This document shows positions 13,321 to 21,201 of a stretch of DNA of 64,000 nt, piece after piece. The first letter of the stretch is position 1. Each line of letters begins with the position of its first letter. The stretch spans positions 1,984,001-2,048,000 of the forward strand of contig OZ218960.1 in the NCBI GenBank assembly GCA_965112735.1, in the 5' to 3' direction. A program made the translations under genes and the position numbers. This DNA is from Phaeosaccion multiseriatum (taxonomy: Eukaryota > Protista > Ochrophyta, other classes). A model generated the notes under the pieces. That model was not told the origin of the DNA and searched no databases. It saw only the letters and a list, made by a program, of their open reading frames with translations.

Positions 13321-14970
13321 TCACGGCTCCCAAGGCTGAGGATGGCTGGCCCTATTCCCACCCCCTGCTGCCACCACTACATCTCTGACGTCTCTACATC
13401 TCCGTACCTCTTCTACAAAGGCTCTGGCACTCGAACTCAACTCATCCGCTTGTTGGGCAGCGCCCCGATACATGGTGGCTCCCAATGCGAACCCGTGAGC
13501 CCCGCTTCGGGTGTATGCCTCTAACATGTCTACGGTCACACCACCAGCCGCGATGACGCTGGTACCCCGGGGGAGCTTGCCAACGAGCTCTCTCAGACAC
13601 TCGGGCGTCACGACATCAGACGGGTACAGCTTAAGAATGTCCGCGCCCAAACTCAGAGCATGAAGGGCGTCCGGCAGCGACGCCACGCCTGTTGGGGAGG
13701 GGAGGGGAGGGGAAGGATGCTTCAGACCATATTCTTTGGGTTCTTGAGGGTCGGAAGCAAGGTTCCACTTGCGAGCGGGTGGCGGGTGGGGGGGTGGCGC
13801 GTCTCGTGCTGAGCGCTTCGGTCGGTCCCCGCACGGTATGCGCCGGGCAGGAGAGTGAAGGGGTGCGGAAGAGAGAGAGAGAGAGAGAGAGAGATGTTTG
13901 CAGCCAGCACGGATAGAGAGGCAGTCTCTAGCTCTCCCAGCTCTCTCAGCTCTCTCAGCTCTCTCAGCTCTCTCCCCTCTTGACCCTTGCATTTACCTGG
14001 AATACTGATTAGCCCGAGCGCCTTCGTTGCTTGCACGACTCGAGCGTCGAGGTGCGGGCTGCTGATGAACGCCGCGCCTGCCGCCGCTAGAGCGCTGATC
14101 TACAGTTGTGCCATCACGGAGAGGGGAGGGTGCGAGGTGTGAGGCGAGGTGAGGCTGGAAGCGATCTCAGTGCAAGAGCCTTGACGCGGCAGCGAGCATT
14201 GGGCCGGAGCACGCCAAGCCAGAGCCCTAACTTGCCTGCTGAGCGTCTCTGACTCCCGAGGCCCCGACTACGCTTGACGACGACGACCATTGCGATGGCG
14301 ACGACGAGCCTGGCATGGAGGAGTCAGGCGTTGAGGAGCCAGGCATTGGGGACTGCCTCTGTGTCAGCCGCCGGAGAATGCGCAGTACATCAGGACTGTT
14401 TGCGGTGATGGACATCATGCGGAAGCCCGCCCTCCACAGCGCATCGGCAGTCAAGTCGATGGTCTCCAGCGGAGGGGCTTTGAGCACGGCGATAAGAGGG
14501 CGGGCGAACAGCCCCCTCTGCTGATCGAGGGAGTGGCCGCCTGCGGCTGGAGCTGCTGCTGGAGCTGCTGCCGGAGTTGCTGATGGAGGAGGAGGGTGGG
14601 ACCTCGCTGCTCGCAAGTGAGACGCGTCCTCGCCCTCGTCCTCTGGCCATCCATCATCGTCGCCCTCAAAGCCTTGCAAGGCACTTCCCCTTCTGCCGCT
14701 GAAGCTACGGTCTCTGGGATGATGTCGCCTGTTTCTCCTCCACTCTTCCCAGCGGGTTCCATCCACAGACCCGCACAGGAAGCATAACGGAGAGGCGACA
14801 GCAGAGGCCGGCACTAACATGCCATTCGTCCCACTCCTCTGCCCCTCCCCGCCTCCCAAGGCGCCAAAATAGTCAGCAGAAGCACCGCTATTCGTGAGGA
14901 CGAGACCCACACACGGGATGTAGCGCCCTAGAGGTCGCCGTCGCTTCTGGCCTGCACGTGGGGCATTCAT
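13321..14970 (-). CDS. KDPG/KDPGal (Eda/DgoA-family) class I aldolase-like protein with N-terminal extension, 3 exons
   Basis: PLIAVLK..AGFRMMSITANSP..VGASGV / AAGAAFISSPHLD..LISIPG / ALSLGADILKLYPS..VIAAGGV..GAHGFALG; start uncertain (15054, 14970 or ~14820); first intron is GC-AG. Confidence 0.8.
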
Positions 14971-15093
14971 CCTCCTCTTTATTCTTGATTGCTTGATACT
15001 TCCCCTGGATCTCCCCTGCTCCCCTTCGTTCAGCAGTTGGTTCTCGAAGGTCATTTGTCATTTTTGCAATCTTTGCTTCTCAGCAGCCAAGAG

Positions 15094-18000
15094 ATGGAGC
15101 TCTTAGCTGCGCTCTCGCTGCTTTTCATGCTCCACCGCATCCAGCAGGCCACGGCTTTCCTTGCCCCCTCTTCTTCTGGACGTGTGGGCCTGGATTATAG
15201 ACTTCAACGAGCAGCGAGAGCAGGAGCAGGAGGAGAGGGGTTGGCTGGAGTAGTGCGAGGGCGGGGGCTGAAGAGACGCATACATGGCTCCCATCAGCGC
15301 AGTATTAGGTATTATACCAAGTCACAGCTTGGGCGAGCGAGCAAGCTCTTTGGATCCATAGGAGAGGCAAGGGAGGAGGATGAACCGGGCTGGATTCACG
15401 ACCCGTGGGAGAAGGGCGTACGCTTTAGCTTGGAGGTACAGCAGGTGCTCCACAAAGAGCAGAGTGGGTTCCAAAAGGTGAGGACAGGACCTTATATGCG
15501 TGTATGGCTTACAAAGGCAAAGTGTAAAGCTTGCAAATGCTAATCTCACTACCTGCTTCTGCTCATGCTCATGTGAGCGGTTGGCTGCGGCGGTGGTGCT
15601 CTCTTTGTCTCAATCACACCACATGCCTTCGATGTAGGTCAACCCACCCTTCTCAGTCTCCCCACTCACCATCTCTTGCCTCGTCCGCGACCATTGCTCG
15701 GTCTCAGATCGAGGTGGTGTCCACACCGTTCCATGGGCGAGTGCTCGTGCTGGATGGGGCCTTCCAGTGCGCAGAGAGGGACGAGGCAGGGTAAGGAAAG
15801 GGTGCTCACAAATCTTCCTTCTCTTTGCTATCATCTCTTGCCGCTACCTGTCCCGCCCCCCCCCCTCACTTTGTCACTCTGCCTCAGCGCAACGCTCCTC
15901 TCCTCCTCGTCTTGACACTCGCCCGCCCCTCCCCCCTCGTCCCTTTTGCAGATACCACGAAATGCTTGCTCACGTCCCCCTCTGTCGAGCGGGGGCGACT
16001 CAGGAGGGCGTAGAGGATAAGAAGAAGAGAGCCCTCATCATCGGAGGTGGGGACGGAGGCACGGCACGAGAGATACTGCGGCACTCAGACATGGAGAGCG
16101 TGGACTTGGTGGACATTGATAAGAGCGTGTTCGATGTGGCTCGACGCTTTCTCCCGAACATCTGGAGACACCCCGACTCCACAGACGAGCGTTACATGGC
16201 TATCGACGACGACCCCCGCCTCACGCTGCACACCAAGGACGGCTTGGCCTTCGTCAACGTACGTGGTAGGAGTCTTATGGTAGACAGTGGTATAGAAGTA
16301 GCGCCGTAGACCCGACGCCTTTCGTCCCCATGCCATGCTCTTGTGGTGCGAGTGGACCACGTGGATTGGACGTTCCGTGGTGTTGTGCATCCTGTACCCG
16401 GCGAGAAGAGAAGCCCACCGCCTTCCTCCTCCTCCTCCTCCTCCTCCTCCTCCTCCTCCTCCTCCTCCTCCTCTTGCCCACCCCTCAGGACGAGTCTGTG
16501 GGGCAATATGACCTCATCGTTGTGGACGCCAGCGATCCTATCGGCCCCGGCTGCGCGCTCTACTCGCAGAGCTTCTACTCGGCCCTCAGGCGGCGCCTCA
16601 ACAAGGGGGGGGCCGTGGCCGTGCAGGGGGGCTCGTTTTGGTACCTCCCCTTGGTCTTTCGGACGGTCTATCATGGCCTCAAGAGCGCTTTCCCCGTGGT
16701 GAAGCCGTACGAGTGTTTCACGGCACTGTATCCCGGGGGTGTGTGGAACCTCCACTTGGCCACTTTAGGTGCGTTTTGTCTTGTTTTGTTTGCGTTGTAT
16801 GTGACACTTAACGGCTTGTGATTCGCCCCCGTGTTGAGTGTGTTGAGTGGGGTTTTGTCGTCCGGGTAGGGTATACCCTTGTCCCCCTATGTATGCGTTG
16901 GGCGCCTCGCTCCTCATGTCGTTCATCCCAAACGCTCCATCAGTTTCATGTTCCTTTTTTTATCAGACCCTACCCAGTCATCCGCGAAACTGCCATTCCC
17001 TAATCTGCACTCATACAGGCGATGACCCTTCGCTGGTGGACGAGGCTCGGGCAGAGGCCTTGTGCTCCTCTTCCTCCAAGTCGAAGGGACGGGGCTTGAT
17101 GTTCTACTCCTCCGCCCGCCACTCCTCGGCCTTCGCTGTCCCTCCCGTTGCCCTGAGGGAGCTACATGATAAGCCAGCGCCCACCCTGGAGGAAACAACC
17201 GCGGACCTCAATGCCATTATGGGCTACGGGGGGGAGGGAGAGGAGCTGTCCCAGCAGCAGCAGCAGCAACAGCAACAGCAGAAGGAGCAGGAGGAGCAGT
17301 CGCAGGATCAGGAGTGGTGGGACACAGAGGTGGAGACAGCGCTAAGCGGCATCATCCACCAAGCCGTGAAGGAGTCGGAGGAGGGATGCAAACCCATTGC
17401 CGCGTTCGACGCCGATGGCACCTTATGGGACGTTGACGCGACCGAGCTGCTGCTGGCTTGGGTTGGTAAAGGGGGGGGAGAGGGGAGAGGGGGGAGCGAG
17501 GCGGGGGGGGGGGAAGAAGAGGGGGGAGAGGTGTCGCACTGGTGTGGCTGGCGGGAGCGGCACGGAGACTTTGAGCGGAGGTACTATAACATGCTTCAAG
17601 AGGGGCGCAAGGCAGAGGCATATGGCTACGCGGCTCAGCTCTTCGAGGGCATGTCTCTGACGGACATTGAGCGGTTGGCAAAGGAGTCCTTCGAGGTCAA
17701 TGTCAAGCATCGCATCTTGCCGGAAATGGTGAAGCTTGTCACCGACTTGCGAGCCGCAGGGTGGAGGGTGTGTATCGTCACTGCGAGTCCGCGATGGGTG
17801 GTAGAGGAGGGGGCAAGGGCGCTTGGAGTGAGCCTAGACGACGTGCTCGGGATTGAGGTGGAGGTGGAGGAGGGCCAAGCGACAGACCGATTGGTCATGC
17901 CGCTCACTCTGCGGGAGGGGAAAGTCAAGGCCCTTGAGGTGAGTGTGTGTGACTTGTATTCTGAGAGTTGAGGGGGAGGGGGGGAGAGGGGAGGGGAGGG

Positions 18001-18567
18001 GAGAGGGGAGGGGGTGAAGAGCGGTGAAAGGCGCCGTGGTTCCTCATCTGAACGGGCACTCGTGAGGCATTGTCAGCACTACTTTCATGTGTGTGGTCGT
18101 TGGCACTCAGTGCTCCCTTCCCGGACTTGGTTGCTCGCTGGCTTTAGGGAACATCACAGCCTCAGCGCCTAACACTCGTGTGCGAATGGAGCGATCGCTC
18201 CCGTCTTGTCCTTTCGTGTCGGTCCTCTCTCTCCCTTATCTCCCTCTCTCTCTAATCTCTCTCTCTCCCTCTCTCTCTCCCTCTCTCTCTCTCTCTCTCC
18301 CTCGCTCCCTCCCTCCCTCCCCCCCTCTCCCTCTCTCTCCCTCTCGTACCACAGGCCAGATACAGTAGCCCTCCCGCCCTGGCCGCCGGCAACTCCCTCG
18401 ATGACGGCCCTATGCTCAAAATGGCCAGCCACGGCCTCGTCGTCGACCCCGCCCTGAGCGACGAGCTGCAGACCTTGGCGGAGACGCAAGGGTGGCTCAG
18501 GCATTCCTCGTCTCTGCTGGCCGCCGCTGCGAGGCAGAACCAAGTGTCGGCAAGGGAGGGAGGATAA
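15094..18567 (+). CDS. Plastid-targeted spermidine synthase (aminopropyltransferase)-HAD phosphatase fusion, 6 exons
   Basis: Signal peptide ending ATA-FL; VLDGAFQCAERDE, YHEMLAHVP, LIIGGGDGG, VDID, YDLIVVDASDPIGP; then AAFDADGTLW, IVTASP, GKVKAL, AGNSLDDGPML; exons ~15094-15477, 15708-15790, 15952-16258, 16489-16768, 17019-17938, 18355-18567. Confidence 0.88.
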
Positions 18568-18739
18568 AGAAGAGAAACGAAAAAGATGGTAGTTCGTGGT
18601 AGGGATGGCACTTTCCTCCCCTTTTCTTATTTCGCAACAAAACTTGAAAGAGAGTTAGCTCCATCGCAGGGGAGAGGACACGAGAGATCCACGGGCTCTA
18701 CGTTTGCCTTCTCCATCAGAGGATCTTAGAAAATAGACC

Positions 18740-21201
<2,462 letters not shown>

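Follow-up and report, generated by a model that had tools for sequence, protein, structure and literature searches.

A spermidine synthase-type aminopropyltransferase joined to a HAD-IB domain behind a plastid-type presequence in the ochrophyte Phaeosaccion multiseriatum

We analysed a stretch of 64,000 nucleotides (nt) of Phaeosaccion multiseriatum DNA (contig OZ218960.1, positions 1,984,001 to 2,048,000 of the forward strand), referred to here as the window, and concentrated on one gene on its plus strand between positions 15094 and 18567. The analysis confirmed, at the DNA level, that a single six-exon gene joins a complete aminopropyltransferase to a complete HAD domain behind a plastid-type presequence. 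Six stop-free stretches joined at GT..AG borders give a coding sequence of 2187 nt, which encodes 728 amino acids (aa) and ends in a TAA stop codon at 18565-18567, and the five introns measure 161-416 nt. The exons and motifs of this gene are located as follows.

15094-15477, plus strand: exon 1, with the first half of the PF17284 (tetramerisation) N-domain at its end; donor AAG/GTGAGG
15094-15156, plus strand: predicted signal peptide, aa 1-21, MELLAALSLLFMLHRIQQATA, with cleavage before Phe22 (ATA/F, then LAP)
15157-15387, plus strand: transit-peptide-like stretch, ~aa 22-98, rich in Arg/Lys, Ser, Gly and Ala, called from its composition
15708-15790, plus strand: exon 2, second half of the PF17284 domain; GT..AG splice sites
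15952-16258, plus strand: exon 3, first half of the aminopropyltransferase catalytic domain, with YHE, GGGDGG, the VDID acidic residue and DG
16043-16060, plus strand: GGGDGG, in exon 3
16489-16768, plus strand: exon 4, second half of the catalytic domain, with DASDP-IGPG and YPGG
16525-16539, plus strand: DASDP, in exon 4, reading on as DASDPIGPG
17019-17938, plus strand: exon 5, the domain junction, in a stop-free frame
to ~17230, plus strand: C-terminal tail of the synthase, FYSSARHSSAFAVPP, and its native terminal helix, in exon 5
~17231-17320, plus strand: polyglutamine (polyQ)/acidic spacer, with a CAG run at 17244-17313
17408-17422, plus strand: HAD motif I, DADGT, in exon 5
~17466-17530, plus strand: low-complexity insertion rich in Gly and Glu in the HAD cap, in exon 5
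17780-17788, plus strand: HAD motif II, TAS, in exon 5
17921-17923, plus strand: HAD motif III, K (K653), in exon 5
18355-18567, plus strand: exon 6, the HAD end with motif IV and the stop codon, aligning with the C-termini of all fusion orthologues
18388-18405, plus strand: HAD motif IV, GNSLDD, in exon 6

Family scans were made on single exons and on orthologue proteins. The PF17284 profile is continuous over the first splice, with positions 2-30 in exon 1 (aa 100-128, 19.7 bits) and positions 31-53 in exon 2 (23.6 bits; cut-off 22.1). PF01564 positions 4-86 correspond to exon 3 (86.7 bits, E 1.9e-24) and positions 91-175 to exon 4 (54.9 bits, E 1e-14; cut-off 22.9 for both), and exon 5 matched PF12710 at exon aa 177-305 with 71.7 bits (cut-off 27). 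The splicing model is supported because the profile positions run on from exon to exon. The NCBIfam models named the middle exons as polyamine aminopropyltransferase/speE (NF002010, TIGR00417) and exon 5 as HAD-IB. Along exon 5 we found, in this order, the synthase tail, the polyQ/acidic spacer, the HAD N-helix, motif I, the Gly/Glu-rich insertion, motif II and motif III. All motifs listed in the original prediction, which had been made from the letters of this DNA, were present: the synthase tail, polyQ, DADGT, TAS and K in exon 5, GNSLDD in exon 6, and GGGDGG and DASDP in exons 3 and 4.

A word search with exon 5 identified a fusion protein of Hapterophycus (P0001, 580 aa) with the same three Pfam domains and 43% identity over 98% of the exon. 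With P0001 as query, the same architecture was found in Scytosiphon (P0009, 674 aa), Ectocarpus sp. (612 aa), Discosporangium (P0011, 734 aa) and a JGI metagenome protein from an environmental eukaryote (P0012, 564 aa). The spliced window protein is collinear with these five fusion orthologues from the synthase N-domain through the HAD C-terminus. Since the junction sits within exon 5, the join between synthase and HAD is not made by splice choice; likewise, in Scytosiphon and Discosporangium the exon with the synthase tail continues into the first HAD helix, and the environmental fusion is a single intron-free open reading frame on a 25-kb metagenome contig (L004:6001-7695). Three different gene structures (exon 5, the brown-algal exon and the intron-free frame) thus hold one frame open over the junction, and the claim that the fusion is not a splicing artefact was borne out. 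The last intron, after EGKVKALE, is identical in position and phase in Discosporangium.

We then compared positions 15000-18700 with public DNA contigs from four runs of one sample, which is possibly the source of the assembly, and found zero differences. The contigs break at simple repeats, including the CAG run at 17244-17313, and the CAG run is therefore not independently verified; by homology, both of its flanks lie in one frame. The original prediction had pointed to 17150-17400 as the place where a stop or frameshift might lie. The contigs revealed no difference there outside the CAG run, at which they break.

These data also bear on the possibility that the locus does not make one protein but two products, through an internal promoter, premature polyadenylation or alternative splicing, with the open spacer frame being incidental. 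In the search of public runs the locus matched four DNA-type sets and no RNA run, the spacer, a low-complexity CAG repeat, has a length that independent contigs do not confirm, and in Fibrocapsa the HAD occurs as a stand-alone transcript. Set against these points are the three independent gene structures with an open junction frame and the finding that neither a start codon context nor a targeting peptide lies ahead of the HAD half; a HAD made alone would also be without the plastid presequence. We regard two separate products as very improbable.

Two low-complexity features of the gene were noted in addition. The Gly/Glu-rich insertion (~21 aa, in the HAD cap loop) has no counterpart in any orthologue, and the public contigs break there. 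Judged from its sequence it is probably coding; a hidden 63-nt intron at 17466-17530 is unlikely, because the segment is purine-rich and without a pyrimidine tract and the real introns start at 161 nt. Microsatellites of (CCT)n, (GGGGA)n-like and (CT)n type at 16413-16484, 17966-18019 and 18224-18350 fill introns 3 and 5, and the short-read contigs of all four runs end at them.

The fusion architecture is rare. This rests on an exhaustive profile search, in which a profile of synthase tail, spacer and HAD was scored against 1.84 billion representative proteins and gave 3798 hits. Among the best 150 of the 3798 hits the only fusion was the environmental protein, which represents the brown-algal proteins at 50% identity; the remaining ones were HAD-only proteins of 99-418 aa, nearly all of 230-418 aa. 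The next best hits comprised a partial Phaeothamnion protein, the stand-alone HAD transcript of the raphidophyte Fibrocapsa and an unnamed 327-aa protein with a signal-peptide-like start. No more fusions were found among the matches listed in a metagenome scan or in a word search with an alignment of eukaryote HADs. As far as these data show, the fusion is confined to brown algae and a few related ochrophytes.

Databases label the fusion proteins 'unnamed protein product' or merely 'spermidine synthase', and full-text literature searches found no paper on the PF01564+PF12710 pairing. A 2025 survey of aminopropyltransferase evolution makes no mention of a synthase-HAD pairing and states that the aminopropyltransferase fusions of stramenopiles are unstudied (PMC12803844). 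These results agree with the original prediction, which did not know the pairing from characterised enzymes: rather than being common or already characterised, the architecture has one representative in the best 150 of 3798 hits, and our literature search gave no description of it. The fusion is an undescribed variant built of two known enzyme families.

Two observations concern the models of related genes. Discosporangium P0011 contains, at aa 519-677 (L090:5694-6170), an insertion of ~88 aa exactly at the Scytosiphon intron site, which is probably an intron retained in the public annotation. On the metagenome contig an ABC1-kinase gene (L004:4192-4920, minus strand) lies beside the fusion gene, and a Chrysophaeum model (P0029, 973 aa) merges ABC1 and spermidine-synthase domains, which suggests that the ABC1 kinase is either a conserved neighbour of the fusion or part of a merged annotation.

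The synthase half has the features of SpeE (B. subtilis 1iy9, human 2o05, Arabidopsis SPDS1), namely the PF17284+PF01564 fold, GGGDGG, the acidic ribose-binding residue, DG, D-x-S-D-P-x-GP and YPGG; unlike SpeE, the algal protein has a bipartite presequence ahead of the synthase domain and a HAD domain C-terminal to it. B. subtilis SpeE (1iy9) was its best hit among solved structures with 146 bits, and thermospermine synthase scored much lower. The fusions show no variation in GGGDGG and DASDPIGPG, which are at least 95% conserved in the bacterial relatives. Every residue that is invariant in the unfused relatives is kept, and a comparison of the fusions with unfused bacterial relatives revealed 8 group-specific positions, all conservative and none in the catalytic motifs. 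Because the catalytic positions are unchanged relative to the unfused enzymes, a new phosphorylated acceptor is disfavoured. From its sequence, the product is probably spermidine, with some uncertainty because an orthologue misses the speE equivalog cut-offs; spermine or norspermidine has been reported as the product of close bacterial fusions with S-adenosylmethionine decarboxylase (AdoMetDC) (PMC12803844, PMC6356823).

Those bacterial fusions and their diatom counterparts (PF02675+PF01564), discussed in the same two papers, belong to the same aminopropyltransferase subfamily and are also fusions in polyamine synthesis; identity over the synthase domain is 49-56% for P0020, P0024, P0025, P0027 and P0035. 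They differ from the algal protein in the partner, which is N-terminal and supplies decarboxylated S-adenosylmethionine (dcSAM) in the AdoMetDC fusions, whereas here it is a C-terminal phosphatase without a known role in polyamine synthesis.

The HAD half was then assigned to a class. TIGR01488 (HAD-IB, cut-off 45) is passed by the HAD domains of orthologues (51.6 and 49.7), and exon 5, which is without motif IV, reaches 40.8; with the PF12710 score of exon 5, this upholds the HAD-IB class proposed originally. The best NCBIfam model, TIGR01490 ('hyp1'), remained under its cut-off (71.8 vs 98.3). Two narrower identities were rejected: histidinol-phosphatase (NF052360/NF052359), which scored 38.6-51 bits where the cut-off is 280 and 21-38 bits where it is 400, and ThrH, which lay far beneath the family cut-off. 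All 55 members of the HAD family profile have the nucleophile Asp, the acid/base Asp, the Thr, Ser and Lys, and the final Asp of motif IV. The place of the first acidic residue in this motif is taken by Asn (GNSLDD), the usual residue in the subfamily; a few members have GDS.

An AlphaFold2 model of an orthologue HAD (pLDDT 96) has five helices (41-122) between strands 27-30 and 126-134, so that a helical C1 cap is present between motifs I and II, and its top fold hits are HAD-IB enzymes. Foldseek listed two proteins of unknown function, then PchP and then phosphoserine phosphatases; PchP had the highest query TM-score (0.83) together with the highest query coverage. PchP (4as2) was also the first hit of the 55-sequence family profile among solved structures (E 1.2e-21). 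A PDB search with a 126-aa piece covering the HAD N-helix and cap returned designed-repeat noise only. The same HAD-IB core and helical C1 cap are found in the 'hyp1' proteins of unknown function (TIGR01490; 3fvv of Bordetella, 4ovy of Planctomyces) and in SerB phosphoserine phosphatases, both of which rank at the top of the Foldseek list.

PchP acts on phosphocholine and phosphoethanolamine, and its residues E42, E43 and 82YYY84 have been implicated in alkylammonium binding (PMC3170909). The algal HAD family has in common with PchP D31/D33/T35, D40, E43, Y83, Y95, Q100 and G104, as well as the motif II Ser, the motif III Lys and the last motif IV Asp; the invariant Asp and near-invariant Glu of the family after motif I align to D40 and E43. 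The alkylammonium site is conserved only in part: E43 and Y83 (and D40) are kept, E42 is replaced by Ala, Thr or Gly, and neither Y82 nor Y84 is retained. PchP differs further in being periplasmic and ~90 residues longer, with extra loops. By its sequence, the HAD half resembles PchP and is not a PchP member. Because all characterised relatives act on amine-carrying phosphoesters, the substrate is most likely, as a guess by analogy, a phosphoester with a cationic amine of the phosphocholine, phosphoethanolamine or phosphoserine type.

The Asn in motif IV raises the question of whether the HAD half might instead be a regulatory or ligand-binding module with weak activity or none, such as a polyamine or alkylammonium sensor that tunes the synthase. 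Asn starts the motif in the fusions and in most close relatives, and because the first motif IV Asp is replaced, HAD activity could be reduced; the equivalent D262 of PchP is reported to be catalytic, and PchP possesses an inhibitory site that binds alkylammonium compounds (PMC3170909). On the other hand, the catalytic set is invariant over the 55 family members, free-living bacterial enzymes included, and the GDS of some members points to an Asn/Asp interchange within an otherwise strictly conserved set. A sensor role consequently seems improbable to us.

We next considered where the two halves came from. The tree of the synthase domain placed the window protein, with weak support (80/84), among the other fusions and a small number of unfused proteins of eukaryotes, beside a Myxococcota/deltaproteobacterial clade in which many members are AdoMetDC-fused; it does not belong to the canonical cytosolic spermidine synthases of eukaryotes. 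In the HAD tree an ochrophyte clade (95/78), which includes the unfused Fibrocapsa protein, lies inside a 96/98 set with Myxococcales HADs, and the 80 bacterial loci with this HAD subfamily are almost all from Myxococcota or Bdellovibrionota. By sequence, both halves are nearest to bacterial proteins of the Myxococcota/Bdellovibrionota type. The KPxPxL...ADL..I segment after the synthase domain corresponds to the C-terminal end of unfused bacterial relatives, and the W-E...L..L helix ahead of motif I corresponds to the start of unfused bacterial HADs. Because both elements are already present in unfused relatives, two complete bacterial-type proteins appear to have been joined end to end; a short variable spacer alone separates them, a polyQ/acidic run in this alga.

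The surroundings of the bacterial HAD genes were also inspected. In Myxococcota loci a gene for a 4HBT_2 (hotdog) thioesterase comes after the HAD gene, and genes for an AMP-binding ligase and a WXXGXW protein lie nearby. The stand-alone HAD-IB and thioesterase genes share one strand (L005:1324-2537, L001:8001-9674, L008:5476-6917) and overlap by 4 nt in L005-L007 (2085 vs 2088); upstream of the Myxococcota-type HAD, the opposite strand carries the WXXGXW protein (L001, L002, L008) and/or the ligase (L006, L008). The HAD-thioesterase pair may form an operon, which would hint that the bacterial subfamily has a part in acyl or lipid metabolism. In Bdellovibrionota loci the HAD gene is flanked by a divergent GlpD-like gene and, on the other side, by a convergent aminopeptidase P gene. 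In 5 of the 80 loci (L034, L041, L044, L072 and L082, all Bdellovibrio spp.) an AdoMetDC-spermidine synthase fusion gene is situated 4.5-6.5 kb upstream of the HAD gene, with SOD, the GlpD-like gene and others on mixed strands in between. A polyamine link was rejected as a reading of these neighbourhoods, as the synthase and HAD genes are close but not in one operon.

Plastid targeting was assessed from the N-terminus. A signal peptide, Phe at the +1 position and a basic, hydroxylated stretch are the defining features of an ochrophyte plastid presequence. The core of the predicted signal peptide, LLAALSLLF, has a Kyte-Doolittle value of 2.73 over 9 aa, and the first 100 aa contain 16 Arg+Lys and 8 Asp+Glu. 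The ~75 residues of the transit-like stretch, which are basic and rich in Ser, Gly and Ala, cannot be aligned to the orthologues. The signal peptide and ATA/F that had been recognised originally are present, and the pattern recurs in both full-length brown-algal orthologues, with Phe at +1 in Scytosiphon P0009 (T-A-T-A/F-I-Q-P) and Discosporangium P0011 (S-R-C/F-V-A-P). A stand-alone relative, P0050, likewise begins with a signal-peptide-like leader. The N-terminus therefore fits an ochrophyte plastid presequence, and the protein would be located in the plastid.

Entry into the secretory pathway without delivery to the stroma, so that the protein would end in the endoplasmic reticulum, the periplastidial space or outside the cell, is the competing reading of this N-terminus. 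The signal peptide alone is clear, the putative upstream leader of the environmental orthologue is followed by Pro rather than Phe at +1, and the N-termini of several unfused eukaryotic relatives look like signals or anchors with no obvious Phe motif. In the window protein and the two full-length brown-algal proteins alike, Phe comes directly past the predicted cleavage site and is followed by a basic hydroxylated stretch; this argues for the stroma, and we consider a non-stromal location unlikely.

Taken together, we favour, at roughly even confidence, a nuclear gene for a bifunctional plastid protein in which two active enzymes share one presequence for co-targeting rather than for obligate channelling. 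A single bipartite presequence would take the protein into the complex plastid. There the synthase half, the N-terminal two thirds, would oligomerise through its N-domain and move the aminopropyl group of dcSAM to a di- or polyamine, most likely from putrescine to spermidine, with a spermine- or norspermidine-type product possible. The C-terminal third, a complete HAD-IB phosphomonoesterase tethered by the variable low-complexity spacer, would hydrolyse a small phosphoester bearing a cationic amine group. The fusion would mainly serve the shared targeting and co-expression of two amine-metabolism enzymes.

Several points weigh against this interpretation. Targeting was judged by eye and from a hydropathy score, and the environmental orthologue has the Pro described above. 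The public sets that matched the locus include no RNA run. For the synthase, residues 1-345 of P0001 scored just under the NCBIfam equivalog cut-offs (NF002010 248.6 vs 260; TIGR00417 219.2 vs 249.55). For the HAD half, motif IV has Asn where most HADs, PchP D262 included, have the first Asp, the resemblance to PchP is distant, at ~16% identity over the fold alignment, and the two better Foldseek hits are the proteins of unknown function. Finally, the retention of the fusion across brown algae and this alga could equally mean true catalytic coupling.

Such coupling had been proposed in the original prediction as a two-step plastid pathway, in which a phospho-amine such as phosphoethanolamine is aminopropylated and the HAD then removes the phosphate, giving an aminopropylated amino alcohol. 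In its favour, the best characterised relative of the HAD is a phosphocholine/phosphoethanolamine phosphatase with two acidic residues past motif I in common, and the fusion has been kept in distant ochrophytes. The chloroplast PSP-like/GPDH of Dunaliella salina (6iuy), found among both the sequence and the fold hits, is likewise a plastid HAD-IB fused to a metabolic enzyme, and differs in that its HAD is N-terminal. The HAD of 6iuy hydrolyses the glycerol-3-phosphate made by its partner domain, and this mechanism offers a precedent for a HAD-IB that acts on the product of its partner.

The synthase itself argues the other way: it keeps every catalytic and acidic pocket residue, with only the 8 conservative changes, whereas one would expect the pocket to be remodelled if the acceptor bore a negatively charged phosphate at its distal end. 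The bacterial genes are not in one operon, being separated in those five loci by opposite-strand genes, and the Fibrocapsa HAD is a stand-alone transcript. To our knowledge, no aminopropyltransferase with a phosphorylated product has been described, and we know of no aminopropyl-amino-alcohol metabolite of the kind this pathway would yield, which also counts against it. The absent operon link, the separate Fibrocapsa HAD and the unchanged synthase pocket make an obligate phospho-acceptor pathway less likely than co-targeting and co-expression. The proposal thus has the PchP relative on its side, fared poorly on the unchanged catalytic sites and the missing operon, and is in our judgement a minor possibility; obligate two-step coupling would be speculative.

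The second coupling suggested originally was a link to the salvage of methylthioadenosine (MTA) and methionine, in which the MTA set free by the synthase would be turned into a phosphorylated compound and the HAD would act on this compound as MtnX or an enolase-phosphatase does. Aminopropyl transfer always yields MTA as its co-product, which speaks for this idea, and MtnX is a HAD-IB enzyme that does turn up in the fold search. Its structure (2fea) ranked only 39th there, with 11% identity and E 7e-6, NCBIfam scans of exon 5 and the orthologues gave no MtnX or MtnC hit (E<=0.01 or 0.001), and the conserved residues past motif I are acidic, as in phospho-amine phosphatases. The results therefore disfavour a salvage role, to which we assign a very low probability.

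A bolder version, which we consider doubtful, is an undescribed ochrophyte plastid pathway in which the aminopropyltransferase and the PchP-like phosphatase would work in sequence on a phospho-amine or phospho-amino-alcohol, as a package from predatory-type bacteria, and would yield new aminopropylated amino alcohols or polyamine-like head groups.

Two neighbouring genes were recognised in the window.

13423-14099, minus strand: KDPG/KHG-aldolase-like gene, matched by tblastx to the Scytosiphon flank (L089:7484-8501, E 2e-14), where the called gene hits PF01081
~19350-19500, plus strand: exon of a Rab-type small GTPase (PF00071) gene, which begins at window position ~19.3 kb, downstream of the fusion gene, with a (CTC)n repeat before the exon

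The aldolase-like gene adjoins the fusion gene head to head here and tail to tail in Scytosiphon, an adjacency that looks like conserved microsynteny with local rearrangement. Neither neighbour bears on the function of the fusion.

Polyamine synthesis in ochrophytes has been thought of as cytosolic, and in Phaeodactylum SDS1/2 and SAMDC localise to the cytoplasm (PMC10968388). If the favoured reading of co-targeted enzymes is true, a presequence-bearing aminopropyltransferase of bacterial type would constitute a separate plastid polyamine route, which raises the question of how dcSAM is supplied to the plastid. The HAD subfamily of Myxococcota and Bdellovibrionota is large and wholly uncharacterised, and the fusion is its only functional hint. 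If the two halves are merely co-targeted, the gene would be a clean case in which a transferred bacterial gene acquired plastid import by joining on behind a gene whose product was targeted already.

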